A stretch of 64,000 bases of DNA, from NCBI GenBank assembly GCA_040285825.1, contig JAUPSS010000007.1, positions 1,958,689 through 2,022,688 on the forward strand. The letters are read 5' to 3'. This document shows positions 3 through 45,959 of the stretch, one piece after another. A program made the translations under genes and the position numbers. Within the stretch, counting starts at the first letter, position 1, and every line of letters starts with the position of its first letter. The stretch comes from Eukaryota sp. TZLM1-RC (lineage: Eukaryota; Protista; Metamonada: BaSk clade). The notes below the pieces were generated by a model. The model made no database searches. It saw only the letters and a program-made list of their open reading frames with translations, and had not been told where the DNA came from.

Positions 3-2627
3 CCATCTATTGCCATAATCTCTTTCCGACCAGTCCATGTTGGTTGCGAGGAGAGCTCGATTAGCCTCATCCAGTCTGCTGAATTGGGTTCTTCTTAGAA
101 TTTGAGCCCAAATGATGCGTTCATCTCTTGAGGTAGGGACCATAGGAGAAGAGATAGCTAGGTGAGCACCTTGGTATCGTAGCGCATTTAACACTTCGGG
201 GGTGACACATTCAGCGAGGCCTCGGGGGTTGATCCTCATGGCTTGACGGAACAAGTCCCATTCGTGAACTGGTTCTCCAGTGATGTTACCAAAATACTCA
301 TCGATCGGTGGTTGGGAACCTTCTCTAGCTAGTTCTAATTCTTCATGTAGTCTGGCAACTTCGTTAGCTAGAGCTATCTGGGCTGGATCCTCAACGTTAC
401 CTCTCGTTTCTCTTAAGACTCGGTCGGTACGACTCCAGAGAATGAATTTGTTGACAAACTTTAGGAGTTTATCAGCGTCTCTCAAATCACAAGCCTCAAG
501 ATATGGACGTTTAGGACGGTCCCTACGTCTGTCATCTCGGTCTCTTGATCCAATCATTGAAGAGAGGAGAAGGCTACTTTCGTATGTGCCCGAGAAAGGT
601 GAATGATGTGAGGAAATGGAGGATGTTGAACCTGTCGTGGAAGGTGTAGGTAGGGGTTGAGGAGCTCGACTAACGGGAGTGATGGGAGCAGCTACTGCAT
701 CAGAAGATGTGGTGGGGGTGGGTGATTCACTGCTCACAGTGACAACGTCGTCGTCAGCTTGTTCCATAGCAGATTGGTTGGGGTTAGAGGTTTCCGTGAT
801 AGGAAATGAATCAGTTTCCATAGGAGGTTGTGGTGATTCAGGAGGTTGAGCGGAGGAAGATGGAGCTTCACTCTGTTGAGGTTCAAGGGAAGGTACTGTC
901 TCTTCAATCTGGGCTGGAACCTGATAAGAAGAGATCGCTGGTTGAACCAAGCGTGTTTTCTCTATACGACCTTCTACCATTACCCACTTTAACATCCTGG
1001 ATTCTATGCATCCAGGGAAAACGGTGACGAGCTGGAGGGCTCTTTGAAGATTGCCAGATCTTCTGTGGTCGGGACCACAATATGACGCTATATGATCAGG
1101 ACGTCTATCATATAGAAAGAGTCTTTCACCATATGTGGTTTCGGTAAACCACCACCCTGTTCTATAATCTCTGTCGATAAGGATATCGAGAGATGCGTTG
1201 TACCCAGGGCTGAACCTAGGGTATGGGCAAGGGTTGTGAACGTTTATGAAGAGGTTGTCTTCATCTCCAGCGAAGCGTCTGAATACTCCTTCTCGAGTAG
1301 TTCTCATGAACCTAACTCCGGGTCTTGGTTCATAAGTTGGTTCAGGGTCATTCCTGGAGGTTTCTGGGGTGATCCTTTCATCGGAAAGAAATGGACCAAT
1401 TCTGGGAGAGATCCATATTCCTAAGTCGTTCTCGACTTTGGGGCCGTAGAAAGGAGGACGCTTGTTGCTCATCTCCGTGGGAGGGATGGCCTCTGGGTCC
1501 TCTGGAATGACTCGTGTGTCCCTATATCTAGCGTAAGGGTTGTGCTGGCGGGAAGCACCATGATGAACACTTGAGCTAGCGTAGGAGCTAGTTTGAGAAG
1601 GGGTGTGTTTAGCAAGTGTAGAGGATGTTCCTCTTCTAGCCTGTAACTCTCTTTCCAGTCTGTTCTTGAGTTTCCAGATTCGATCTTCATGGAAGTAACG
1701 TTCTAAATATTTTTTAGAAACCTCACCAGTTTCTCTATTAATTTCAGGAACATGTTCCGTGGGAGGAACCGGAGGTTGAGCTGTGTGAGAAAATTCCCTG
1801 GGAGGTTCCTCATAGTCAACCAGATCTGAGAATAATAGTTCATACCTCTTCCTTTGCTCTTCGGAAAGATGCGAAGGAAAATTTGGTGTGCTAGGAGTGG
1901 AATCTCTAGCCTGGGGAGGGGAAACAGACAGATTGTTAACTCCTCTTACTGTTGATGTAGTAAGAGGAGATCCTGAAGTTGGGACAGCAGGATTTTGAAT
2001 AGTTCTCCTAACAGTTGGAACTGCAGGGAGAAGCTGTTGAGAGTGAGAGGGTGGAACCTCAGAACTGAATGGAAGGGATGAAGATGGTACTTCAATGGCC
2101 TTCTTAGAGGAGGAAAAGGGTTGGTCTTCCAATCCTTCTTTTGCAGTGAGAGAAGGTTGAACAGTCTCTCTGCTCTGAGTAGAAGGTGAAGATGGTACTT
2201 CAGAACTTCTTCCAGGGAGAGGAGAAGGTGGGACTTTAGATGCCCCCAATTGCGAAGGGGGAAGAGGAGCAACGGAATCCTCAACATCTTCATCGTCGTA
2301 GGAGACTAATGAAGGACTTCTTCCTTCAGAAGGAATAGAATCCTTAGAAGGGTCGTCTCCTTCCGCAGGAACGGAATCCCGAGGAGAGGAACTTCCTTCC
2401 ATTGGAACGGAATCCTCAGGAAGGGAACTATCTTCCCTTGGGGTAGAACCCTCGGGAAGAGTTGCTTCAGGAAGCGCAGAAGCTTCAACCGAAGAAGGAG
2501 GCACGGAAGCAGGGTCTGTGGTTAGTGGTGAGGAAGAGGGACCAGTCTCTTCCTCAAGGATCCTACGCTGAGCCGGGGACGACCCAATACGTATTGATGG
2601 TCTTGGCTGTTGTGAGTTAGAATTCAT
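3..2627 (-). CDS. Gag (N-terminal part of Gag-Pol), open at window edge
   Basis: ATG at 2627 (MNSNSQQPRPSIRIG...). The frame was spot-checked open to the edge and is absent from the ORF track because it has no stop. DADKLLKFVNKFILW, GEPVHEWDLFRQAMRINP and IWAQILRRTQF align with DAKKIFDFVLNFGNW, GQPVHQYDFVRSMFFEVDP and IWEYLLLSTQY in the 38909 ORF. Confidence 0.8.
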   Translation of the reverse strand, partial: MNSNSQQPRPSIRIGSSPAQRRILEEETGPSSSPLTTDPASVPPSSVEASALPEATLPEGSTPREDSSLPEDSVPMEGSSSPRDSVPAEGDDPSKDSIPSEGRSPSLVSYDDEDVEDSVAPLPPSQLGASKVPPSPLPGRSSEVPSSPSTQSRETVQPSLTAKEGLEDQPFSSSKKAIEVPSSSLPFSSEVPPSHSQQLLPAVPTVRRTIQNPAVPTSGSPLTTSTVRGVNNLSVSPPQARDSTPSTPNFPSHLSEEQRKRYELLFSDLVDYEEPPREFSHTAQPPVPPTEHVPEINRETGEVSKKYLERYFHEDRIWKLKNRLERELQARRGTSSTLAKHTPSQTSSYASSSVHHGASRQHNPYARYRDTRVIPEDPEAIPPTEMSNKRPPFYGPKVENDLGIWISPRIGPFLSDERITPETSRNDPEPTYEPRPGVRFMRTTREGVFRRFAGDEDNLFINVHNPCPYPRFSPGYNASLDILIDRDYRTGWWFTETTYGERLFLYDRRPDHIASYCGPDHRRSGNLQRALQLVTVFPGCIESRMLKWVMVEGRIEKTRLVQPAISSYQVPAQIEETVPSLEPQQSEAPSSSAQPPESPQPPMETDSFPITETSNPNQSAMEQADDDVVTVSSESPTPTTSSDAVAAPITPVSRAPQPLPTPSTTGSTSSISSHHSPFSGTYESSLLLSSMIGSRDRDDRRRDRPKRPYLEACDLRDADKLLKFVNKFILWSRTDRVLRETRGNVEDPAQIALANEVARLHEELELAREGSQPPIDEYFGNITGEPVHEWDLFRQAMRINPRGLAECVTPEVLNALRYQGAHLAISSPMVPTSRDERIIWAQILRRTQFSRLDEANRALLATNMDWSERDYGNRW

Positions 2628-2748
2628 ACAGTGTAGTATAACAGAAGTATAATTTATTACGAAGAGGTATTGTATTCACTCTTCTTAAGCTAACAGGCGG
2701 AATATTAATAACTAAACTATTAACTATAAATACTATTCAAGACTAACA
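2595..2748 (-). repeat. 5' LTR of element A (~154 bp, TG...CATCA)
   Basis: Boundaries inferred by analogy with the paired LTRs at 38788/45560 (TG start, AATAAA, internal ATG, CATCA end). The partner LTR is outside the window. Confidence 0.65.
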
Positions 2749-4639: not shown

Positions 4640-7600
4640 TGTCCGAAGGAGGGTTCTCATCATCCTCCGATACAAACACTCATGACCATACTCCTCATTC
4701 AACCAAATCCCATCACAGTCCAGAAGTTCATACTATATTCCGACCTAATCCGACCTAATTCTTCAAACTCGCAGAATGGAACATTGCGTTGTGTATTCTC
4801 GACAACCTCGGTATTGACCTTCTCTTTAACGAGCTTTTCAATCCTTGGACGTATTCTTCCGTCTACGTTAAACGTCGTCTAAGTGATTTCATTGATGTTC
4901 TCTCCAAGTTTTATAACAACTGGTGTAATACCAGAACCTTCGAGGAACAAAAGCGAGCTCGGAAATCTGTCAAAAACTTCACTGGTCCGGGAGCTCAAGG
5001 TCTCATGTTCGGTGGGAGACCCCATCCCCAAGACCAAAAGCTCGTCGACACTTATGAATATGTCGAACAAGTATCGACCAATAAGGAGCAGCTCAGACGC
5101 AGAGTCAAAAATCTAAAGAAACGTTCTGCCAAAGACGATAAGTTTGCTGCATCCTCTTCTGACATCTGTGGATTTTGCAAAGAGCCAGGCCATTCGGTTA
5201 AGGAATGCCTACATCCGCATTGCAAGAGATCTGCAATTCCAAAGAATAAGCGTCGTAGTTTAGACAGTTATAGCAGTAGTGATAATAAACATCCTCGTAG
5301 TTACAGAATCAAAACAATTAACATCAAGAATCCACACCCCACCAACGTTAATCCATTTTCAGATCCTACTACTGACTCTCTCAAACAATCGTTTACGACA
5401 TCATCACATTCTCCTCCCAAACGCCTCTTGAATCCTTTGAGCACATGCGATTCTGAATCTTCGAGTATTAATAGAATTTTTAGCTTATCTTCTGTTTGTG
5501 CCATTAAATTTATTAATGGTACCAAGTTTATAGAAATCTGGTTGCAGATTAATTACACAGAAGCATCTGGTCTTAATGATAGTGGAGCATCCATATCTGT
5601 CATCTCAAGAGACCTATCCACAAAATGCAAGATGGAACACTAATCTGAATCTGTCAAATTCATTGGTGTTAATGGAGAACCATCAAACTCTGACCGCAAT
5701 GCCAAAGGAATCCTATCCTTCAATGTCGGTAGCATTGCCAAAGTTGTGCATCATACCAAATCGTTACCAATCGTTCCAGGCAACAACATATGGAATAGAA
5801 TAGAATGGAATAGACATTCTATATGAACTCAGCCCCATGAACAACGACAGGGTACACATTCATCTCGACGAGCTTCACAGAACACTAATGTTACCTGCAT
5901 CTGAGTTTGACCTTAGAATTTCACAGACATCTGATTTTAAGTTGTCACAAATATTCGAAGATCACGTCAACTCGTCAGGTTGTAAAATAAAGCTCAACAA
6001 TCAATCAGAAAATCAACAGCTCCTCGCAACTCTCGAAGAGTTCAAAGATGTTTTCAAGTTGAAACCCCATGAAGACGGCATCGACTGTAACCCCATGGAC
6101 ATCGATTTCTACGATGAAGACACTGTTGTTTATCGTCCACCTCGCAGATTAAACCCTGAACGACTCAAAATCGCCAACCAAATCTTCGATGAGTTAATCA
6201 AATCTGGTTTCGCCACAGAATCCAACGGTTGATTCAGCTCCCCAGTCGTCCTTGTAGTTTACCCTGATCATCGGAAACCACGTCTTACAGGCGACTTCAG
6301 TGGTCCGAATGGAGTCAATGCGAACACTATCCCTATCGCCCCAAACCTTCCAAAGATCTCTGATGTATTAGAGTTCTTATCTCAGATATTGCTATTGGCG
6401 GCGTCATTTGGGAAGAATATGATCCTTGTGAACACAATGGCACTATTCTCATTGACCGTAAGGTCCGACCTATCAGTTTCTTCAGCAGAGTTCTCTCCAA
6501 TTCCCAAAAGAATTGGTCAACGATGCAGAAAGAGCTTTACGCTATACTTCTCATCCTAACAGAATCATGCATCGAGAGTTACTTCAAAAGCAGGAAGCTC
6601 ACGATATTCACAGATCACAGGAACCTCTCATATCTGGTAACATCCCCTGATAAGAATCGAATTGTCACACGTAGGTTACCAATACTCAGTGAGTTCGACT
6701 TCGAGTTGGTACACACCTCGGGGGAAGACAACTACTGGGCAGACAAGCTATCCAGACAGGTCCCAACGACCAATCCTGTACGCATAAACTCAATCAACAC
6801 AGGCAACATTATTCTTCAGCGAGCGAGTCCACCTATGAACCGTTTCACCCAATCTATTATATCAGAACCTACAATCCATCAGACGACTCTGCTCTTCCAG
6901 CCCCTGACGAGATGACCTTCGGGATACACACAAAATCCTCATTTTGAAGGAGAAATGTGCATCTGCAATCCCCATGTTCGATCCTTGGTTGAGTAGAATC
7001 CGTTCAGAGCAAAAACAACCTGTTGCAGCTCACGAGCTTTTATTTAATAACTGTTCCGTCAATCATCTTGACCTCTACGTTAACGAATCAGGCAAGATCA
7101 TCATCCCGTCATCACTCATCAACGACACGCTCTTGATCATACACGGTTATGTATCAGGCGGTGATCCTAGTATGTCTGAGAGTTTACGCAGGCTATCCTC
7201 TAGCGCCTACTACTGGCCCAGTATGACTGATGTATGAAGAACCACGTGCGTTCTTGTCCATCATGTCAGATAACGGCACCTGTCCCCAAATCTATCACTC
7301 CACCCACCGGATCTCTCTGGGCTGACAAACCCTTGGCGAGATTAAACGTGGATACCATTGGCCCTCTTCCTCCAGACCAAGAGGCCAATAAGTACATCTT
7401 AGTTTTCGTGGACGGTTTCACTCGGTATACAATCCTCGTACCCCTCAAAGAATTAAACGCAATACTGACAGCCGACGCTTTGATTTGGAGTGTGTGTGCA
7501 GTCTTTGGTATACCCTACAGCATTCACAGTGACAACGGCCCAGAATTCGCCAACAACGTTTTTAAATCACTGTGCGAATTCTTGTCTATCAAGGTGACGA

Positions 7601-8626
7601 ACAGTGTTCCAAATTTCTGTCAATCAAATGGCCTAGTTGAAAGACGTCATAGAGTCATCTTACAAAATTTTAGGAAGCTCCTAATCGATTTTAACGCCTA
7701 TGACAACTGGTCAGAATACGTACCTTACGTAGAACTCTTAACGAATTCATCTAAGAGCTCTGTCACAGGTTTATAGTCCATTCGAGCTTATGTTTGGGTC
7801 AGACGTCAGTCCCAGAGCTGATCCTTTATCAATTTTCTCCACCATCGAAAAGGTTAGCACTGAGGTTCCTTTCATTCTGGATATCCAATCTAAATTCCAT
7901 CGATTGCAAGAAAAACGTGAAAAAGCAGAAATCACCCAAACATCGAAATCGCTGAAGGAAAAGCCAAGCAAGAATAACCTGCTATTCGAAATTGGATGCT
8001 TAATCCTCAAATCATCTAGTAACTCCAAATTACATGGAAATTATCTGGGCCCATATCTGGTCATCGACAAACCTAGTAAATCAACTTTATTAATAAAGAA
8101 TTTAATCACAGGTGTCGAATCTAAGGCTAGCATTTCACAATGCAAATTATACCAGTCTGACAGGCCCACTGATGATGAGTTTCATAGTATCGTGGCCTCA
8201 GATGATACTGAGGAGCATCTATTATTGGAAGTTTTCAGCCAGGATGGTAACGAGTGTCAAGTCGTACACGCTGGAGATGTACGAGGCACTGAGCCTGTCG
8301 ACCGCATTAAGAACATTAAGGCCTACCAAGCCTTCCTCCAGACTAATAAGTCGCGACCCCCTGCTAGTCAACCTACTCGCAAGCAACCTCGTAGAAGAGC
8401 CAGAAAAGACTGTCGAAAGGAGGGGAAGAAGTAGTGTTAGTCTTTACACTATTCTAGAGTGTAGTTAGTCTTATCTATTTGTTCTTGTATATTAGCTTAA
8501 TGTTTATTGTTCTGTCATGGAGACTTCACTAGTGATGGTATTGAAATTCACTATAGCTCATTTCCCCGTCGTAATAAATTACTCTCTCTCTCTATACATA
8601 TGTCTAACTCTAGCCCACAGGCTTCA
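4640..8626 (+). mobile_element. Decayed Ty3/Gypsy LTR retrotransposon B (5' LTR not found; RT core deleted)
   Basis: CCHC knuckle CGFCKEPGHSVKEC, protease LNDSGAS, RT start (PDHRKPRLTGDF), RNase H (QKELYAI, TDHRNL), integrase (CPSC, DTIG, DNG, ERRH), polypurine tract and 3' LTR. Colinear with the 38909 ORF but with frameshifts and stops. Confidence 0.92.
8435..8626 (+). repeat. 3' LTR of element B (~190 bp)
   Basis: Starts TG immediately after the PPT (GAAAGGAGGGGAAGAAG) and the TAG stop. Shares TTCACTAGTGATGG, GAAATTC, TAATAAATTA and an internal ATG with the 38788 LTR. Right end inferred at GCTTCA. Confidence 0.7.
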
Positions 8627-10367: not shown

Positions 10368-12003
10368 CTAATGAAAACTACTGGGAACTGATTCATGAAA
10401 ATTATTCTTATTAGCTTGCCTCTTCTTGCGGACAGCAGGGAAAGATTCCAAGGTAGGATACAACTTTAAAAGCTCAGAAAACCTATGAGAAAAGGTGAGA
10501 GGGCGCTTATCTTTACGATAATAAAGATATGCAACAAATTTCTCCAATCCATACAAACCTTTTCCATGGTGATACTCGTATTCTACTAAATCAATAAAGT
10601 CCCTCAAAAGGGTTTCAGAGAAGCGTTTTTCCAATCCAAAACTGAGAAATCTGAAAACACATTGAAGTCCATAATTATAACCAGCAGAGAAATCCTTGAT
10701 AGCAAAGGTTTTGAACTCTTGGTACACTGAGGTAAGAAGTAAGAATTACTATACTTTTTTGGTTAAAATGGTCTCTTAAATAATAGCAAAGGAATCGGTA
10801 CCAGGTGTTCATTTGCTGAGATAATCCAGGACCAAGTCTTCGTCTCTCACGCAGACAATTCTGTCTAAACTTGAGGTATGTTTTCTCCTCAAAGGCACCA
10901 GGTTCCAATAGCCTGTGAGACACATGTGAACTAGACTTGATACTCGAGACAGACTCCCTACGTTGGTTCTTGACGGGAACACTCTTGGAAGGAGTTTCTA
11001 CAGGAGTGCTGGGTTCGGGACCCTTTGCTTCAGGCATAGGCTTAACCTCAATCTTGGGTTCGGCAACAGGCTGTTCCTCGTGATCATAAAAGTAATAGAG
11101 TTGGCTTTGGATATCATCATGGAGCTCCTTCTTTGCTCCTCTTCTGAAATGAGGTTCGGAGACCTTATGTTGTCGCCTTCCTCCTCCAGATTTGACGTCT
11201 TTCTTTTGTCGCTTTGGAGTAACAACTACAAGCCTAGAAAGCTCAGCATCAAATTCGTCAAAGTCATCCTCTGCTTCCTCAGCATAGAGTGACTGCTTGA
11301 TGGTATCAGCTTCTGAATAGGCTCGAGGTCTGGTAGGTGGCAAGGGTTCTTCCTCTACACCAGAGAGGCAGTTTTTATCATCATCTTCCATTTCAAATTG
11401 GTCATCATCAGGGTCAATGGGTGCTTCCTTGAAGATGGAAGACCTGCGAGAGGAAACAACTCGCCAGGAATCTTCTGTACTTGATATCGGACAATAAGCA
11501 GGAAGGGAGGTCGCTACCAGATCATTTGAAAAGCTGGGTGATGTCGTACGAATTTCATGCAGAGTATGTCGTGGACGGAAGGAATGAATGGAACTGTCTA
11601 CACTCATGTTGGTGATTTCACAAAGACCAGCTACTTCATCATCAACATCTTGTTCTATGCGTCGACGAACAAAGCAATGACCAGAATCCTTTGTAACGAG
11701 TTCGACAACATCAGAATCTTGTAAGGCCCGTTCAATAAATGGACAATCTACACCTGTAAGTGAACGCAGCTTTTCAAAAGATGCAAGGAGTGAGAGTGGG
11801 ATAAAACCTTCGGAATCCATATGGCTCTGTAACCAAGCATCACTACGCAGTTGAGAGAGTTCGAAATAACTTTCCACTGCTTCCCGGACTTCGGTCATCA
11901 GTGACTGCATGGAGTCCATGGTTTCTGAGGGATGATCAATGGAACCTTTACGTTCTCGACGTTGCTTGTTGAGTTTAGCTCCCTTTTTGAATGAAGTGAC
12001 CAT
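10368..12003 (-). CDS. LARP1: La-related protein 1 (La motif + DM15), 28-nt intron 10727-10754
   Basis: La motif (VESYF...LRSDAWLQSHMDSEGFIPLSLLASF). DM15 repeats (CLRERRRLGPGLSQQMNTWYRF, YGLEKF). The GT..AG intron joins the two ORFs in frame (NQK-MYQEF). Confidence 0.9.
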
Positions 12004-12067
12004 TGTAGAGATGAATTCAGTTTCAGGGAAGATAAATAAATTAAGTTTTAATATAGACCGGTGGCAG

Positions 12068-12192
12068 TAATTAGTCTCACTCAGACTAATTTTGTACTGA
12101 ATTGTTTGTGCTTACCGGACAGTAATAGTCTCACTCAGACTAATTTTGTAGTGAGACTAATTCTGTACTGAGACTAATTTTGCAGTGAGTCT
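12068..12192. repeat. Cluster of short direct/inverted repeats (AGTCTCACTCAGACTAATTTTGTA / TGAGACTAATT)
   Basis: 4-5 copies of an AGACTAATT motif in both orientations, including the palindrome AATTAGTCT-CACTC-AGACTAATT. Confidence 0.75.
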
Positions 12193-13276
12193 TATTTTGT
12201 CTCGACCTTATTTCTGTTTACCACCAGACAAACCACATCTTTATCAATTAAAAAACACTCAATATATTCTAAAATATAACATTCATCATTTTCTTCATCC
12301 ATCAGCTCAGTAATCTCCTGATGGGGTATGAAAACTTCGGTTTGAATCATCATCGAATCCCTGTACTTCAGTGAAATCATGGTCGTCACTCCCATCTTCC
12401 CAGATATCTTCATCATAACCAGAATAAAAAAATGATTGGTACAAAGTTTTATAAGTTTTTGAAAAAAGTAGTGGAAAATTGTTTGAGAATGTGTACTTTC
12501 TATTTCCTAACCAACATGGATACATTTGTATCAGAATTGTCCACATGGTTGAATGTGGAAAATGGATTGTCAAATGAGTCTGGATCAGCGACTCTATCTT
12601 AGGTATCACAACTTTCATAAATTCAGAATAGAATGAAAAGTTTTCAAAAAGTGTCACAACAGCAAGCTACGATTCAAAGTTCTTTCCGCCAATTACAAAT
12701 TATAGAAAGGTAAAACCTATGCACAACTGTTATATACTAATTGAATTACTGCCATAATTCACTTGTCATTTTCATGAATTTGTACAAATTGGTTTCAAAA
12801 ACGTGTTGCTAAGTGAACATTTTTATATGTTTCCGTTTGACAGTAGTTTCTATTATCACAAAATTTTAATTGATTGAGTTAATTTGTGGACTGAAAGTAC
12901 TCATATTTGGCGTTCTATATGTCAACAAGCAACAAACACAACAATTCAGTTTTCTGCTGAAATGGATTATAATATTGTTAATACAACAATTATGAATTCA
13001 CTTCATGTTAACGACCAATCATTCCACATATCTCCATTGACAAAGTTTAACAAAAAAATGCTGATGATGTGTGGTGGTGAACTCTGACACCAGGTTCTGA
13101 TGTTTTGGAAGCACAAGTTAGCATAAGGACGTATTTATTGTTGCTTTGATCGTAGATATACGCCATTTTATTGTTCCAATTGATGAACAATGTCTCAACA
13201 ACCGAGTGCCTTGTGAAAACGAAGCGAAAGAATTGAACACAAGATACAAAAACTATACTATAAACACGCACATAAC

Positions 13277-13685: not shown

Positions 13686-14283
13686 TGGAAGGAAAAAAGG
13701 AGAATATGAATTCTCTTTTCACGCACTTATTATGTTTTTCTCATTGGTGATCCTCTTAAAGTACAGTTTGTCTTCACGAACACTTCTTCACAAACATCGC
13801 TGACGATGAATCCCCATGTTTTTTCAACTTGAAGCTGAATCTTAAATATACCTGTAGGAAACGAATGCAATTTTGTGTCATCTTTTGTACATGCAATACG
13901 TTCTGTTCTGTGTTATAATCAATGGTTAACTGTTATTTGAACATCACAATGTTCAGCTATGATGTTTAGATTCTGTTTCTGTTTCGCATTAACCCAGGTT
14001 TTTAAAAGACGTGTGGCGTATTCATTCACATTGATTAGTTTTTACATGAATCAATTTCAATAATATGATACTAGTACATTCTCATAGAACCAAAATTAAT
14101 CATAAGAAATTCAAATATACAGACTAGTATCATATCTCTTCTTTCTATATATATTTTTTTCTTCATGATGTGCGTGAGGAAGATTTTCCATAGTTGTATC
14201 AATTTTGATTTAAGGGTCTTGAAAGAAGGGAATTCATAAAAAATTCACTTTACGATGCAAATGTTAACTTCAACATCTACAAA

Positions 14284-24516: not shown

Positions 24517-24904
24517 TTAAATTAATTATTAGATTAATTAATTATTAGATTAGGATAACTGTTTTCAATGACTCAAATTTTGATCTTCAGATTACAATAT
24601 AATAATTTTTCACTTTATTTCTTTCCAAAACCTGGTTGAAATCTTAAAATATTACAAGAATTATTAGGAATTTTGACTACTTTTCCATTAACTTCTAGAT
24701 TTAAGCCGTGAAATCAGTTGATTTGATCGTTCTTACATTAGCATTAAGATCTTTGATAACGGGTAGAAATGATAGAATTGAACATGAAAGAATGAGAAAT
24801 CAAAAAAAGAAATACAACATGTACAAATTAATTCAACCCAAACTAAAAACCACTCCAAAAAAACTAATTAAAACAATTAATTAATTGATTAATTAAGATA
24901 CAAC

Positions 24905-38491: not shown

Positions 38492-38787
38492 GGACTACGT
38501 TGGACTAGAACTGATTAGATGAGTCATGCATGTAAGAGATTTTGATGGGCTTTCAGAAGATTTTCAAAAAAGTCATCTTCCATTTAGTTGCTTCCATTTC
38601 CAATTCCATGCAGGTTTTGAGGATGTGGAGCTTTAATTGTTATTTGATGTCTCTACTTCTGGGCTTTGTGTAATAAAAAGATTATAGAAATAAATATTGC
38701 ATTTCTTGGCAGTCATTAATGTTTGAGTGTTTTGATGTAATCTTCATGCTCCTTTCATGTCCCCATTTCTATGTCATAATAACTGAA

Positions 38788-38923
38788 TGTTGTACTGTGG
38801 ACAATTAGTCTAGTACATTTATATTTATATAACATAGTTCACTAGTGATGGCCTTTATAAGGGCCGGTGAAATTCTAATAAATTATTCCTTATTCTTTGT
38901 TATCATATATGGATAGAGCATCA
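38788..38923 (+). repeat. 5' LTR (136 bp)
   Basis: Direct repeat of 45560-45695. Confidence 0.98.
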
Positions 38924-41900
38924 TTAATTAATGGCTTGAATAGCCACAATGATAACCCTCCTTCCTCTATGAGGAAGAGTAATGTCCCTTCTTTGAAGGA
39001 GAACAATCCACCGCCCTCGGTGAGTAATCCTCCACCTACGGAGAGTAATCCTTCCTTCGGGAAGAGTAATCCTCCAAAGGAGAGTGAGCTTTCCGCTGAG
39101 AAGAGCATTGCCTCTCAGAAAGAAAGCCACCTCCCCAATAAGGAGAGTGAACTTCGCACTGAGGAGAGCCCTACCTCCCAGAAAGGAAGTCACCTCCCTA
39201 ATACGGAGAGAGGTAACCACGTTGTTGATGTGTCAGAACTGTACACATACCCCGACAACTCCTCGGAGCTCCTTCCTTGTAGGAAGAGTTTTCTCACTCC
39301 GAGCGAGCAACGGAGATTCAAAGCGTTTGTTGTAAGTAACAAATCTGACGCTTGTACAGAAGGTGAAGGAGGCGAAGGCGAGCAACAGTCTACGACTGGC
39401 TCCTCACGTAAAACTCCCTCCTCACCTACTTCTGACACCAGCTCAAGTGAGGAACCTCAAAGTGATTCCAGAGGATCTCTTGATCAGAACTACAGTAGGA
39501 GAGGGGATGAGAGCGATGATGAACCACCTCATACACCCAATCCTTCTAATCCAACTCCTAGTTTTCCATCTACGGAAAGGACTTCTCAGGGTCTTTACCG
39601 AAGGAAACTAGCTAAAGCAGTTGAGGCTGTAACTAGAGATTTCTTATTGGACCTCATCGCCAATCCTCCTGATGATGTAAAGGATTGGAGTGATGACGAA
39701 TTATTAAAAATGGCTGAGAATGAGTCAGAGCGTCTTGCGGGAGACGTAGACCCAGCCGAATGTGAGAAGGTGCGACGTGACTATTTAGCGAAACGTTGGC
39801 CCTTCCTCTTTGGGGAAGCCCACGGCAAAACACTTGACGACGTCGTCTACGAGAGTTATGATCAAAGTCCAAATCTTTTAAAGAGATTGGATGATCTTAC
39901 CGATTCGGCAGTCTCGTGTGGAATGAGTGCAGTCGAGGATTGCTATTTTAGCGCACCTCGTTCAAAGTATCAAGCTGCTACTCCCAGGCCTGCCAAATGG
40001 CATAGGGATGCAATTGATGACCACAAAATATATTTCAGTGGAAATCAAGAAGCTTACGACAGACTATTTTGGATAGCTAAAATGTATCCTCATAATCAAC
40101 AAGGTAGAAACCTTAGAGGCGTCGTAAGTCATTTCCTAGTGGAGAATGTACACCCAAAAGATTCCATTGCGGACATTTTTATTATGCTTGGGGGCAGATT
40201 CGATGAATCTCGAGGTGACACCCTTCAATTTCATACCAAAGAGTCCTATATTAGAGAAATAGGCACAAGGGTAATTGAATTGAAAGAGCAACGTGTTGGC
40301 CCCAACAAGTTAAAACTAGTATACCCTGATGCATGGATGGCTAAACTTAAGGCATGGGTTGATAGCTGGCCCGACCAAAATGTTTTTGAGAATGTCTTAA
40401 TAAAGAGAAGTTGCCTTCCATATGATCATAAACTAGCAGGGGTCCCTAGAGGATCTAAAGATGCACCAGATTGGGTGGATTTAAGGCCACCAGCCCAGAC
40501 TGTACCTGTGCAGGAGGAACCTCCTAAGACAAGATTTATCATTAAGTTGGGCGAAACATTGCCTTCAGAAGAGAGGAATATGAACCTATTTGGTACACCT
40601 TCTGTAGGGCCTCTGGCATCTAGGAGAGCTTCTTGTGAAGCAACTCCTACACAAGCATCTGTTATAAAATCATCTATACCCACGCAACCCCTAGGAACGA
40701 ATGCTCCTAGAGATTCTCTCGTCGACACCCTCGGTCTTTATAGAACTCCTGTAACAGACGAGGAGAAATTGAGGAAAAGAATAGACGACAAACTTAGATG
40801 CCTAGTTAAGTTAAATGAAGCGTTTGACGCCAAGAAGATCTTCGACTTCGTGCTTAACTTTGGCAATTGGGCTAAAACAGTTAGGGATCGCGATGGACCC
40901 ACCAGAGCATTTACGCCGATCACCAAATACGGTCAACCTGTTCATCAGTACGACTTCGTTAGATCTATGTTCTTCGAAGTTGACCCTTTGTATTTGAGAT
41001 TTATGATCGAGGGTAAGGTCATCGCAGAATGGCAGAGTTTTTATGGAGGCCGTACAAACGTGTTAGGCAACAACCCATCTGACGCCGAAATCTGGGAATA
41101 TTTGCTACTCAGCACCCAGTACAAATACCCTACCGATGTTGAAAAGGCTTTAAGGTCTGTAAGACCACCTGAGATCAGTCGCAGAATGACTGCTGAATCT
41201 TCGTGGACAGCCTTCATAGAGCAGATCATATATATAATTCGACGCTCTACAATTATGCCTGGAACGGATGGTAATCCGTCTGTCGTCTACCCAGCAAAGA
41301 GATTTCTCGAAACTATTAACGACAAAACAAACAATCAATTGATGGACACATATATCATTTGGATTGGCAAGTTTGATTCGAGTAACGAGAAACTGGGCGA
41401 TGCGATTTACGATTTAGGTAACACATTTGTTAACAAGGTCAATAGCCTTGAATCCTCGATCAAAGACATGAATTTGATTAGAACAGCTTTTGGTGCTCAC
41501 GCTCCTGCGCAAAACGGACGAAGCCAGTCAAAAGGTCCTTTTAAGAACCCTAGAGTAAGTAGTCGACCCATCCCTTCAGAGCAATGGTGTAACTTATGTA
41601 ATACCAATAAACATCCTGAAGAGAAATGTTTTAAATTAGTGGGAAGACCTGGTTCAAAAAAACGTCATGGAGGTGAAAGACGTGATAGAAAACGTAAAAG
41701 TAGTAGTAATAAACCAGATGATTATACATCTTTTAACAATAACCTTACAAATAATTCAATCAAATCCATTTATAAAATGAGCAAAACAGATTCGAATTAT
41801 AATCACCTAAATCCATTAAAAAGATTTAGAGAGTCATCCAATCCTGTGGGTTCTATCCACAGTGTTAGACTATCCAGGGTAGCAGAGGACCAAGAAAGTT

Positions 41901-44900
41901 TTAACGGGGAACTTTGGTTAACCTGCACCATAAATAACGTGGAAGTACAAGGCGAAATTGATAATGGAGCTGCATTTTCAGCATTATCAATGGATTTAGC
42001 CTCTAAATGTAATATGACAGTTAATGACAATAAGACTGTCGAATACTTATCGGCAAATGGTATTCGCTCCACGACCCTGGGATGTGCAAGTGGTGTTCTT
42101 GCTCTAAATGTGGATAGCTTGGCCACTCAAGTGTTTTTAAGGATCGAATTCCAGATCATTCCTGGTACCAATAATTTTTTGATCGGAAGAGACTTATTAC
42201 AAACCTTGGGGCTACGCACGGAGCACGGTTTTAATATTAATTTGGATCGCGAACATCGCACCATCTTAAATGCTGAATGTGAGTTTGATAATAGAATTTG
42301 TCAACCAATTAGATTCATTGAACAATTGAGTAATAAATCAGACTTAGGTAATGATTTTGGGCATTCCACATTTAGACATGAGTTAGATGAGTTGGGCTGT
42401 AGAATATGCCTGGATGACATTAGGGACGAGGAACGCCTAGTCGTGCTACTCGAAAAATATAGAAATGTATTTAGTGGGCTACCTCACCCGGATGGAATTG
42501 ATTGTCAGCCGATGACCATTCCATTTTATGACGAAAGTAAGGTCGTCAAAAGGAAACCTCGAAAATTAAACCCAGAAAAACAACGGGTAGCCGAGGAAAT
42601 TTTTAACGAATTGATCCGTAATGGATTTGCTGTGCCCGCAAAGTCTCAATTCAGTAGTCCCATCTGTCTTGTGATTTACCCTGATCACAGGAAGCCACGA
42701 TTAACTGGCGATTTTAGTGGTATTGGTGGAGTAAACGATTTAACTAAACCTGTAGAGGCAAATTTGCCCAGGATTAGCGACATTTTAGAGTTTCTAAGTA
42801 AAGCTAATTATATAGCAACTCTAGATTTACCTAAGGCATTTTGGCAGCTCAAAATTGCAGAAGAGGATATTGATAAAACTACCGTATCAATTCCCGGAAT
42901 GTCGATCAGTTTTAAAAGGGCTTGTTTTGGTTTGAAGAACGTTCCTGCAGTCTTCCAAAACATGATGATGGAAATATTTGATTCTGAGGGTGTATTTATT
43001 TATATCGATGATACAATAATAGTAGCTTCAACCCTGGACGAATTTCTATCTAGAGTAGGTACGGTCCTAGAACGCGCCAAACGTTTTAGAGTTAACCTTG
43101 GCCTACCCAAGTGTAGCTTTACCACTTGCAAACATGAAATAAAAATTCTAGGTAGTATTTTTGTAAACAAAACCCGTTATATAGATGAATTTAGGATTGA
43201 GGGACTGATCAACCTACCCAAACCCAGGACATTACCTGAAGTTAGGAGTTTTATAGGATCGATCAATTATATACGTGACTGGTTGCCAAATTTGTCTGAC
43301 TTGATAGAACCAATCAACAAATTAACCAGAAACAAACCGTCAAAGATCAAGTGGACTTCTGATCATGACGAGGCTTTTGGTAAGATTATAAACCTTATTA
43401 AAGCAAATATCCCTCTTGAATTGCCCTCAGAAGACAAGCACATTTTAATAAGTGCGGATGCGTCTGATGTGGCTGTAGGTGGAGTAATATGGCAAGAAGC
43501 TAACCCACCTAAAGATCCTACGACACCGCTAATTAAGAGAAAGGTTGTACCTATTGCCTTCTTTAGCAGATTATTATCAACTTCACAAAAGAATTGGTCT
43601 GTACTTCAGAAAGAGTTGTATGCAATTTTACTAATTCTCACTGACAGTAGTTTAGAAAATTATTTAATTTCGAGGAAATTAACTATTTTCACTGATCATA
43701 GAAATTTAGCATACCTTATATCAGCTCCTGAAAAGAACAGAATTGTGAAGAGGTGGCTACCAATATTGTCAGAATTCAATTTTGATGTAGTCCACACGGC
43801 AGGCGAGGAGAATTATTGGGCAGACATGTTGTCTAGATTGGTTGATACCAAACCCAAAACCCCTCGAGTCCAACAAGTGAGAAACTTGGCACCTCACAGA
43901 GTTGAAGAACAATTACCCTATTTAAATTTATTAACTAGAGTTAATTTGTTAAGGGATGATATTACTCAACCGTCCACAATTGAGCTACCCACGATCAATA
44001 GCTTATCTGCACTGAAAGAAGCAGTTGAGGATACTAAATTTGATTTATTTGACACTTGGATCTCAAAGATTAGGCAAGAACAACTTATAGATGTTGATTC
44101 AAATCCTGATTATTATAAAGATTACAATTATAATTCAGATATTCAATTGTATACCAACAATCGTGGGAAGATTGTTATCCCAGATAGTTTAAAGAAGCAG
44201 ACTTTAACTATCATTCATGGACATGCAAATGTTGGCCATCCTAGTGTGACGACTAGCGTAAAGAAATTACTCAATAGTGATTACTTTTGGCCCGACATGC
44301 GCAACGACATGATTAATCATATTAAGAGATGCCCAGCATGTCAAAAGACGGCACATGTGCCTAAAAAAGTCATTGAATCATCTGGCTCTCTTTGGGCTGA
44401 TCGACCTTTTGCACGATTAAACGCAGATACTATTGGACCATTACAACAAGATGATAATGGATTCAAATATTTAATAGTTTTCGTAGATTCGTTCACTAGG
44501 TATACGATCATTTGCCCTGTAAAGGAATTGAATGCAGTGGAGGCAACCAATCACCTCCTATGGAGTGTAGTATCAATTTTTGGTATCCCACTGTTGATTC
44601 ATAGTGACAATGGTATTGAATTTGCAAATACCATATTCAAAGGGTTATGCGATTTATTAAACATTGAAGTAAGTCGTTCACTAACTAGCTTTTCACAAAG
44701 CAATGGTTTAGTAGAAAGACGACACAGAGACATCTTACAAAGTCTAAGAAAGATTTTGGTGGACTCTGGCGATTATAGCAATTGGAGTGAATATATCCCA
44801 ATTGTACAACTTCAAATCAATTCAACTATTAGTAGAGTTACTGGTCATTCGCCCTACAATTTAATGTTTGGTAGCGACCACAGCCCTAGAGCTGATCCTA

Positions 44901-45559
44901 GTAATATGTTTGAATTAATAAAATCAGCTAATGTTAATATTCCCTTTGTTAAAGATCTTGAAGCAAAACTTGAAAGGATTTCAAAGAAGAGAGAAGAGGC
45001 AGAGCTCAGGCAAGCTCAACAACTGCCTGAAGTTAACAAACATAGGAACCCTTTTAATAAAGGTGACTTAGTTTTGCGATTAAAGACTAATGGTAAACTC
45101 CATGGTTGCTTCGCTGGCCCTTTTCTCGTTGAAGAAGTTAAATCCAATAAAAGTTCATTACTCAAGAATCTTGTCACTGGTTCGATGTCTACGGCAAGTA
45201 TAAATCATTGTAAACTATACCTTTCAGACTTCCCTAAAGAAGATCTTGATTGGCATAAGAATATTGCTGCTGGCGATATGGAAGAATCTGTAATCGTTAA
45301 AATTATAGATCACTTTGATTACGTAGATTCGAACAATAATAAAGTTCCTTATTGTACCGCAGTTTGGTATGGCGGCGAGACTTCGTCTGTCCCAGTTGCT
45401 GACGTCAAAAGCACTGAGGCATATCAAACATATTTGCGCTCTATTAGTCCTCACACTACCAGGAAACGGAAGGTATCTTCTAATTCCAAATCTAAGACTA
45501 ATTCCCCTGCAGTCAGTACTCGTAGCTCTCGTTCGAGATCTAAGAGAGGGAAAAGGTAG
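38909..45559 (+). CDS. Gag-Pol polyprotein, 2216 aa (Gag-CCHC-PR-RT-RNaseH-IN-chromo-like)
   Basis: CNLCNTNKHPEEKC; IDNGA; LDLPKAFWQ, FGLKN, YIDD; ADASD, QKELYA, TDHRNL; H-H-CPAC, DTIG, DNG, ERRH; C-terminal chromo-like segment. Confidence 0.97.
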   Translation: MDRASLINGLNSHNDNPPSSMRKSNVPSLKENNPPPSVSNPPPTESNPSFGKSNPPKESELSAEKSIASQKESHLPNKESELRTEESPTSQKGSHLPNTERGNHVVDVSELYTYPDNSSELLPCRKSFLTPSEQRRFKAFVVSNKSDACTEGEGGEGEQQSTTGSSRKTPSSPTSDTSSSEEPQSDSRGSLDQNYSRRGDESDDEPPHTPNPSNPTPSFPSTERTSQGLYRRKLAKAVEAVTRDFLLDLIANPPDDVKDWSDDELLKMAENESERLAGDVDPAECEKVRRDYLAKRWPFLFGEAHGKTLDDVVYESYDQSPNLLKRLDDLTDSAVSCGMSAVEDCYFSAPRSKYQAATPRPAKWHRDAIDDHKIYFSGNQEAYDRLFWIAKMYPHNQQGRNLRGVVSHFLVENVHPKDSIADIFIMLGGRFDESRGDTLQFHTKESYIREIGTRVIELKEQRVGPNKLKLVYPDAWMAKLKAWVDSWPDQNVFENVLIKRSCLPYDHKLAGVPRGSKDAPDWVDLRPPAQTVPVQEEPPKTRFIIKLGETLPSEERNMNLFGTPSVGPLASRRASCEATPTQASVIKSSIPTQPLGTNAPRDSLVDTLGLYRTPVTDEEKLRKRIDDKLRCLVKLNEAFDAKKIFDFVLNFGNWAKTVRDRDGPTRAFTPITKYGQPVHQYDFVRSMFFEVDPLYLRFMIEGKVIAEWQSFYGGRTNVLGNNPSDAEIWEYLLLSTQYKYPTDVEKALRSVRPPEISRRMTAESSWTAFIEQIIYIIRRSTIMPGTDGNPSVVYPAKRFLETINDKTNNQLMDTYIIWIGKFDSSNEKLGDAIYDLGNTFVNKVNSLESSIKDMNLIRTAFGAHAPAQNGRSQSKGPFKNPRVSSRPIPSEQWCNLCNTNKHPEEKCFKLVGRPGSKKRHGGERRDRKRKSSSNKPDDYTSFNNNLTNNSIKSIYKMSKTDSNYNHLNPLKRFRESSNPVGSIHSVRLSRVAEDQESFNGELWLTCTINNVEVQGEIDNGAAFSALSMDLASKCNMTVNDNKTVEYLSANGIRSTTLGCASGVLALNVDSLATQVFLRIEFQIIPGTNNFLIGRDLLQTLGLRTEHGFNINLDREHRTILNAECEFDNRICQPIRFIEQLSNKSDLGNDFGHSTFRHELDELGCRICLDDIRDEERLVVLLEKYRNVFSGLPHPDGIDCQPMTIPFYDESKVVKRKPRKLNPEKQRVAEEIFNELIRNGFAVPAKSQFSSPICLVIYPDHRKPRLTGDFSGIGGVNDLTKPVEANLPRISDILEFLSKANYIATLDLPKAFWQLKIAEEDIDKTTVSIPGMSISFKRACFGLKNVPAVFQNMMMEIFDSEGVFIYIDDTIIVASTLDEFLSRVGTVLERAKRFRVNLGLPKCSFTTCKHEIKILGSIFVNKTRYIDEFRIEGLINLPKPRTLPEVRSFIGSINYIRDWLPNLSDLIEPINKLTRNKPSKIKWTSDHDEAFGKIINLIKANIPLELPSEDKHILISADASDVAVGGVIWQEANPPKDPTTPLIKRKVVPIAFFSRLLSTSQKNWSVLQKELYAILLILTDSSLENYLISRKLTIFTDHRNLAYLISAPEKNRIVKRWLPILSEFNFDVVHTAGEENYWADMLSRLVDTKPKTPRVQQVRNLAPHRVEEQLPYLNLLTRVNLLRDDITQPSTIELPTINSLSALKEAVEDTKFDLFDTWISKIRQEQLIDVDSNPDYYKDYNYNSDIQLYTNNRGKIVIPDSLKKQTLTIIHGHANVGHPSVTTSVKKLLNSDYFWPDMRNDMINHIKRCPACQKTAHVPKKVIESSGSLWADRPFARLNADTIGPLQQDDNGFKYLIVFVDSFTRYTIICPVKELNAVEATNHLLWSVVSIFGIPLLIHSDNGIEFANTIFKGLCDLLNIEVSRSLTSFSQSNGLVERRHRDILQSLRKILVDSGDYSNWSEYIPIVQLQINSTISRVTGHSPYNLMFGSDHSPRADPSNMFELIKSANVNIPFVKDLEAKLERISKKREEAELRQAQQLPEVNKHRNPFNKGDLVLRLKTNGKLHGCFAGPFLVEEVKSNKSSLLKNLVTGSMSTASINHCKLYLSDFPKEDLDWHKNIAAGDMEESVIVKIIDHFDYVDSNNNKVPYCTAVWYGGETSSVPVADVKSTEAYQTYLRSISPHTTRKRKVSSNSKSKTNSPAVSTRSSRSRSKRGKR
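45542..45556 (+). promoter_or_regulatory. Polypurine tract (plus-strand primer)
   Basis: AAGAGAGGGAAAAGG, separated from the 3' LTR only by the TAG stop. Confidence 0.9.
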
Positions 45560-45695
45560 TGTTGTACTGTGGACAATTAGTCTAGTACATTTATATTTAT
45601 ATAACATAGTTCACTAGTGATGGCCTTTAAAAGGGCCGGTGAAATTCTAATAAATTATTCCTTATTCTTTGTTATCATATATGGATAGAGCATCA
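45560..45695 (+). repeat. 3' LTR (136 bp)
   Basis: Direct repeat of 38788-38923. Confidence 0.98.
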
Positions 45696-45959
45696 TGAAC
45701 CAAAATTGGTAACAAAACAGATTGTTGGAATTGTTTAAGCTACTAATTACAAAAAACAATAGGTGAGTAGCAGTGTGTTGAAATAGTGATCCGCAAAAAA
45801 CAAATGATTCAGAAATAGTGAACACTACTTCTATGGTAGTAGAAGCACAAAACACTTATTATAGGAGCATAGAACAGACATATCATGATTGTGCACTTCA
45901 ATTGTCAACATTGACCTTCTACAGCATGATCAATTTGTCGACAGGACTTTCCAAATCGG

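Follow-up and report, generated by a model that had tools for sequence, protein, structure and literature searches.

In the present study a 64-kb stretch of DNA from the metamonad Skoliomonas, listed as Eukaryota sp. TZLM1-RC (positions 1,958,689 to 2,022,688 of contig JAUPSS010000007.1, assembly GCA_040285825.1; hereafter the window) was analysed, and it was found that an intact Ty3/gypsy long terminal repeat (LTR) retrotransposon, element B, carries a perfect 12-nt palindrome at the position where the tRNA primer-binding site (PBS) of such elements is located. The comparison of related sequences gives solid support to the view that a covarying palindrome stands here in place of the tRNA site. 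We propose that this palindrome is the minus-strand primer-binding site itself and that its pairing partner is the identical site of another RNA molecule of the element, an interpretation to which we would give about an even chance. To our knowledge nearly all retroviruses and LTR retrotransposons use a host tRNA to start DNA synthesis, and the loop-back of the Tf1 type is the only well-studied exception. The lineage described here, which is present in at least three metamonad genera, points to priming by two element RNAs with no host RNA involved.

The palindrome at the 5' junctions of Skoliomonas elements

Element B occupies positions 38788-45695 on the plus strand and was delimited by its LTR pair and its target-site duplication, TGAA, the four bases of which are identical in the 5' copy (38784-38787) and the 3' copy (45696-45699). 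The 136-bp 5' LTR (38788-38923, TG..CA) is a direct repeat, with one mismatch, of the 136-bp 3' LTR (45560-45695), which is directly adjoined by the target duplication. A single open reading frame (ORF; 38909-45559 in the ORF list, plus strand) encodes a polyprotein of 2216 aa; it starts within the 5' LTR and runs to a stop codon immediately before the 3' LTR. According to Pfam the polyprotein contains an aspartic protease (PR, residues 1002-1098), a reverse transcriptase (RT, RVT_1, 1289-1417), an RNase H (1482-1623) and an integrase (IN, 1757-1924), and this PR-RT-RNase H-IN order, with the integrase after RNase H, is that of Ty3/gypsy. A polypurine tract (45542-45556, plus strand) lies in the end of the ORF and is followed by the stop codon TAG and the 3' LTR; its location directly before the 3' LTR is the same in all relatives. 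With its TG..CA LTRs, target duplication, domain order and polypurine tract, element B belongs to the Ty3/gypsy group (Metaviridae). The polyprotein shows 93% identity to a 1351-aa protein from the TZLM1-RC assembly, and close relatives (42-61% identity) were found only in the Skoliomonas assemblies TZLM1-RC, TZLM3-RCL and GEM-RC1, the next matches being at 25-31%.

The palindrome of element B (38922-38933, plus strand) is composed of the last two bases of the LTR, the core TTAATTAA and TG, and it was found exactly as it had been given in a preliminary description of the window. The junction reads GAGC-AT-CA/TTAATTAA/TG-GCTT, where the slashes delimit the core and the LTR ends with the CA at 38922-38923. 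Because the TGAA duplication is present on both sides of the element, this LTR end is fixed to the base. The GAGC at 38916-38919, which is separated from the palindrome by AT, and the GCTT at 38934-38937 are the left and right arms of an optional 4-bp extension of the helix.

The second junction of the window with the same geometry lies on the minus strand (2602-2581) and reads GACC-AT-CA/ATACGTAT/TG-GGTC, its perfect 12-nt palindrome (CA, core ATACGTAT, TG) being located at 2585-2596. The sequence and the geometry reported earlier for this junction are real; nevertheless, it had been attributed to element A, while it belongs to a separate copy, which is here called copy C. The 5' LTR of copy C (2595-2748, minus strand) was recognized by alignment to both LTRs of a relative of the L002/P0006 family, the locus L002. 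The ORF of copy C is open over 875 aa up to the window edge, and its LTR (2748-2595) has no partner LTR in the window. The LTR end is supported by L002, which is a member of the same family (mean column identity of the alignment 87%) and has two LTRs and the target duplication ATAG that give the same CA; the end of this LTR thus does not map elsewhere, as had been feared. Pol sequences were detected by tblastn of the window only in element B and in element A, which is on the plus strand (5368-8434), is 5'-truncated and frameshifted, and ends with a 3' LTR at 8435-8626 (plus strand) that is not followed by a palindrome.

In order to compare these junctions with those of relatives, eight further loci from the three Skoliomonas assemblies were used, in which the LTR ends were set by LTR pairs together with 4-bp target duplications; the locus L008 (P0009 family) was excluded since no LTR pair could be found in it. 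The palindrome is present at the same place in all 11 Skoliomonas 5' junctions, from all three assemblies, with its centre 4 nt past the LTR end. In 10 of the 11 the palindrome is perfect, and six different cores occur. Core TTAATTAA is shared by element B and a second B-family copy in L009, ATACGTAT by copy C and L001, and GTAATTAC by L005, L006 and the own element of L009, while L003 has GTACGTAC and L007 has ATTATAAT. The LTR of L004 ends in TA, and its palindrome accordingly reads TA/ATAATTAT/TA. The imperfect palindrome is that of L002, where ATAAATAT has decayed; L002 is a dead copy, the LTRs of which are 95% identical and the start codon of which is gone from the 5' LTR. Perfect palindromes of at least 12 nt occur by chance at a rate of 4.5e-4 per position, as counted in 214 kb of Skoliomonas DNA. 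As the preliminary description had stated for positions 45695 and 8626, the 3' LTR junctions have no palindrome, and in all of them the arms do not exceed 3 nt.

The own element of L009 was considered as an exception lacking the palindrome; this was rejected, since its 5' junction has the palindrome and it is the 3' LTR that has lost about 95 bp from its interior, as compared with the 5' LTR. In the P0018-family element of L009 the 3' LTR spans 14012-14092 and the 5' LTR 6859-7030, and their ends and the duplication ATTC agree.

The palindrome in other metamonads

Outside Skoliomonas the same arrangement was recognized in two further genera. Aduncisulcus paluster has two elements (L010 and L159) with 68% protein identity and different LTRs, and in each of them the final A of the LTR forms part of a 14-nt palindrome. 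In the one element of Carpediemonas membranifera (L160) a 12-nt palindrome begins right after the CA of the LTR, and the target duplication is ACGT. A partial second copy of the palindrome, in the form of AT-rich 7-8-mers, is located 4-23 nt downstream in Aduncisulcus; in Skoliomonas and Carpediemonas no second inverse copy of at least 7 nt was found within 100 nt.

On the pol tree the 11 palindrome-type elements are separated from four tRNA-type elements with a support of 100/99. The elements of Skoliomonas are grouped in a clade with a long stem in this tree, which was built without reference Tf1/sushi sequences. As far as it can be read from the sequences, the tree would fit a single switch of the priming type.

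Two other roles of the palindrome were considered and rejected. A downstream hairpin could aid the recognition of the start codon, but the distance of the ATG varies: in Skoliomonas it precedes the start of the palindrome by 13 to 31 nt, and in Aduncisulcus it lies downstream of the palindrome by about 90 nt. The palindrome could also be the site of one host DNA-binding protein, but the six cores have nothing except their symmetry in common.

Some additional features of these loci should be mentioned. The target duplications are 3 bp long in Aduncisulcus (CAT and CAG in L010 and L159, respectively) and 4 bp long in Skoliomonas and Carpediemonas. At 7669-7682 in L010, upstream of a protease-containing gene, there is a 14-nt palindrome that has the form CA-N10-TG and TGG directly after it; no LTR context could be established for it. 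The palindrome-type element of L160 lies at the margin of another repeat pair, of 673 bp (5566-6238 and 11408-12080), one copy of which is followed by a non-palindromic sequence beginning with AAGTAGCAGC (6239-6260). This locus has the appearance of a nested insertion, in which the recipient is another LTR element, possibly a non-autonomous one, that has a different priming site.

Covariation and folding of the palindrome

For the covariation analysis nine junctions were aligned without gaps. In this alignment 98.1% of the six core pairs were paired, and four of the six showed changes on both sides; when the partner was shifted by 1-3 columns as a control, the paired fraction was 24-43%, and none of 500 shuffles reached the observed covariation score. 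Double changes could be assigned to sister pairs on the pol tree (two in B/L004, one in L003/L005 and two in L006/L007). Between intact copies there was no uncompensated change: all the differences were compensating double changes. Even the terminal dinucleotide of the LTR takes part in this, since the change from CA in element B to TA in L004 is matched by a change from TG to TA ten bases away. The peptides encoded over the palindrome differ between the families and the Aduncisulcus site is untranslated, therefore it is the pairing that is conserved and not the protein, which confirms on a broader set what had been claimed from the two junctions of the window.

The extended 4-bp stem, separated from the palindrome by the 2-nt bulge, had been described as part of the same structure, and this could be upheld for one subclade only. 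It is present in B, C and L001, and one of its pairs covaries there (G-C, C-G, T-A). As a general feature it had to be rejected, since across the families 69% of its cells are paired and one pair is broken in the second B-family copy in L009.

The central four bases of the palindrome are self-complementary in all 14 junctions (AATT, ACGT, TATA or TTAA). The monomer hairpins predicted for the sites are weak (-1 to -7 kcal/mol), and the predicted gain of a dimer over two monomers is 10-16 kcal/mol. The preliminary description had left fold-back and annealing to a second RNA side by side as ways of priming. Since the central four bases are self-complementary, which a loop does not need, and since a fold-back without a loop is sterically impossible, the pairing of two RNAs is favoured and fold-back priming is disfavoured.

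The same observations bear on the possibility that the palindrome works as a hairpin within one molecule, for example as a signal for RT binding or initiation; a hairpin was proposed in the fungal GalEa elements for their 'conserved hairpin site'. Although weak monomer hairpins are predicted, and the partial second copy in Aduncisulcus resembles the CHSeq2 of GalEa, we consider this improbable: besides the central self-complementarity in all elements, which would be superfluous in a loop, the second copy is absent from Skoliomonas and Carpediemonas and the extended stem is not maintained.

The predicted preference for the dimer is also what would be expected of a site for RNA dimerisation or packaging alone, in which case the priming would be accomplished by an unrecognised host RNA, by a protein primer or by de novo initiation. 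In retroviruses and Ty1 the RNA dimerises through palindromes close to the PBS, as is generally known and is discussed in PMC5445492, and with the 4-bp stem of the B subclade the palindrome could be enclosed in a loop. Nevertheless, dimerisation alone would leave the priming site unexplained, as nothing else is conserved past the LTR end, and it would explain neither why in every family it is the same base of the palindrome at which the LTR ends nor why the terminal CA covaries with TG in L004. Furthermore, the known dimer initiation sites are added to the PBS and do not replace it. We therefore regard this alternative as rather unlikely, and keep to the palindrome as the proposed primer-binding site.

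Search for another primer site

If the elements were primed by a tRNA in the ordinary way, the PBS could begin with the TGG that follows the 8-nt core, and the core would be a mere spacer. This TGG, which stands 8 nt past the LTR end in element B, is indeed found in most of the Skoliomonas junctions, including B and C, but L004 and L007 have TAT and TGT, respectively, instead of it. Where it is present, its TG is part of the palindrome, and the next G is either the partner of a C in the extended stem or the first base of a Gly codon. The sequence past the palindrome is different in every family, and those of B and C, when they are read as tRNA 3' ends, are without the invariant C61 and the T-loop. 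Additionally, a spacer of 8 nt would leave 8 extra bases on the end of the cDNA.

No tRNA gene was found in the 64-kb window, and ARAGORN detected in all the Skoliomonas loci only two tRNA-Pro and one tRNA-His genes. The post-LTR sequence gave no match longer than 7 nt to these three host tRNAs, a set of limited scope. Real tRNA sites have a clearly different appearance: in five two-LTR Ty3/gypsy elements from metagenome contigs, which served as controls, a TGG-led, GC-rich and non-palindromic site begins 1-6 nt after the LTR, and the arms do not exceed 3 nt. Many other metagenome contigs had a single collapsed LTR, so that the ends could not be set, and a scan of IMG/VR gave mostly caulimovirus-like genomes and nothing useful. 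On the whole it is very improbable that the downstream TGG marks a tRNA site.

The three tRNA genes mentioned above, two tRNA-Pro(TGG) and one tRNA-His, are all located in L005 (TZLM3-RCL), at 1231-1303, 11746-11817 and 12176-12248, and flank the element at a distance of a few kb at most. This may be due to chance or to a preference for the neighbourhood of tRNA genes.

Intramolecular self-priming of the Tf1/sushi type, in which the 5' end of the transcript loops back to the post-LTR sequence, is a further conceivable way of starting without a tRNA. The lack of a tRNA PBS is shared with Tf1/sushi, Tcn1 and TAR elements (PMC6317226), and the very short LTRs and the single ORF are also in keeping with it. 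However, the longest complement of the 16 nt after the LTR inside any of the LTRs is 0-7 nt, no better than in shuffles, and the Tf1 sites are not palindromic (PMC5445492). This route therefore deserves hardly any credence for the metamonad elements, and the preliminary description, which had not favoured it, was right in this respect.

Proposed mechanism of priming

It is established, both for retroviruses and for LTR elements, that the place where minus-strand synthesis starts determines the U5 end of the LTR. As the palindrome is locked to the LTR end in every family, the 3' end of the primer must lie inside the palindrome; and as the site is self-complementary while it changes between families, no partner could keep up with these changes except the same site in another RNA of the element. 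We infer from the sequences the pairing of two RNA molecules, the cut, the enzyme and the self-correction which are set out below.

Two RNAs of the element would pair via their palindromes, in some families with the help of a few flanking pairs. One of the two would then be cut inside the duplex or at its 3' edge, probably by the RNase H of the RT, in analogy with Tf1, where RNase H cuts an RNA duplex to make the primer. The new 3'-OH would be extended along the U5 and R regions of the partner RNA. Hypothetically, the cut would be made just before the final TG: the primer would then consist of CA and the core, and the first copied base would fall at the observed LTR end with no need for trimming. 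For the subclade of B, C and L001 the helix of primer and template would be extended to 14 bp by the four additional pairs beyond the 2-nt bulge. When the plus strand copies the primer, the left half-site of the donor RNA would serve as the source from which the right half-site is written anew. By such rewriting of the half-site single mutations would be turned into matched pairs, and this would lead to perfect palindromes with a drifting sequence.

Several points weigh against this mechanism. A 12-bp AU-rich duplex would be a weak primer site in comparison with the 18 bp of a tRNA. The cut would have to be asymmetric, since cleavage of both RNAs would make it impossible to restore the PBS. 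The register of the palindrome is not uniform, since it takes in 2 nt of the LTR in Skoliomonas, 1 nt in Aduncisulcus and 0 nt in Carpediemonas, and one fixed rule of cutting would not suit the three genera unless the trimming by the integrase differs among them. In addition, the tRNA comparison covered three host tRNAs, and the tRNA-type outgroups placed on the tree were only four.

It can be suggested more tentatively, with a confidence somewhat short of even, that we are dealing with a third priming mode of LTR elements, which is based on a self-repairing palindrome, is ancestral to a Ty3/gypsy lineage present in Skoliomonas, Aduncisulcus and Carpediemonas and is either independent of or shared with the fungal GalEa Copia elements.

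Comparison with known systems

No earlier account of such a feature was known to the preliminary description, but a precedent exists. In the fungal GalEa elements of the Ty1/Copia group a 'Conserved Hairpin Site' was reported (Donnart et al. 2017), which is a 10-nt palindrome including the last base of the LTR (PMC5445492). These elements have neither a tRNA PBS nor a complement in U5, no mechanism was proposed for them, and 12-41 nt downstream of the palindrome lies a second copy of it in inverse orientation, CHSeq2, with which it forms a hairpin, with a conserved A/A mismatch (PMC5445492). The only later citation of the GalEa site that was found concerns bivalve TRIMs (miniature retrotransposons that have terminal repeats). 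Both systems share a palindrome of variable sequence at the PBS position, which includes the last LTR base, and the lack of a tRNA PBS. Unlike the fungal Copia elements with their 10-nt site and second copy, however, the metamonad ones are Ty3/gypsy elements, in element B with the integrase following RNase H, their palindromes are 12-14 nt long, and in Skoliomonas and Carpediemonas the second copy is missing.

Self-priming by loop-back has been described for Tf1/sushi elements and predicted for Tcn1 and TAR (PMC6317226). The likeness to the metamonad elements is in the priming without a tRNA from the element's own RNA, which for the latter is our proposal; the difference is that the Tf1 site, which is not palindromic, is complementary to the start of its own transcript and pairs with it, while Skoliomonas has no such complement. 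The dimer initiation sites of retroviruses and the PAL sequence of Ty1 are likewise self-complementary sequences of the 5' leader that let two genomic RNAs pair with each other, but they occur next to a tRNA PBS and have no fixed relation to the end of U5. The metamonad palindrome, on the other hand, occupies the PBS position and overlaps the LTR end, no other PBS was found in its elements, and its closing stem is only partly conserved. Skipper of dictyostelids, in which a polypyrimidine stretch is present instead of TGG (PMC5006619), is another Ty3/gypsy lineage with an unconventional and unexplained priming site, although that site is a run of pyrimidines and not a palindrome. The metamonad site can thus be regarded as a variant among the LTR elements that have no tRNA primer site, and as a new priming mode if the mechanism with two RNAs holds.

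If it does hold, it would offer an explanation for the fungal GalEa sites, which have been unexplained since 2017, it would mean an escape from host defences that act via tRNA fragments, and RNA dimerisation would be coupled to initiation. The 12-nt site with its natural compensatory variants represents a simple test system. It should also be emphasized for annotation that LTR-finding pipelines which require a tRNA PBS miss or down-rank elements of the palindrome type.

Other features of the window and of the LTRs

Element A (5368-8626) was detected by tblastn in several frames, has neither a 5' LTR nor the N-terminal portion of the ORF, and is arranged head to head with copy C. Another 14-nt palindrome of the window, at 24874-24887, was considered as an LTR junction and rejected, since it lies in AT-rich intergenic sequence.

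The Skoliomonas LTRs are 91-172 bp long and the ORF starts inside them, therefore R and U5 must be very short. A 14-nt block, TTCACTAGTGATGG, which contains the palindromic CACTAGTG, is identical in the LTRs of element B (38838-38851) and element A (8525-8538), and the two LTRs are otherwise dissimilar; the block may be a shared promoter or regulatory element. In every Skoliomonas family AATAAA or ATAAA is present about 40-60 nt before the LTR end, for example at 38878-38883 in element B, and this motif could represent either a poly(A) signal or an element of the TATA type.

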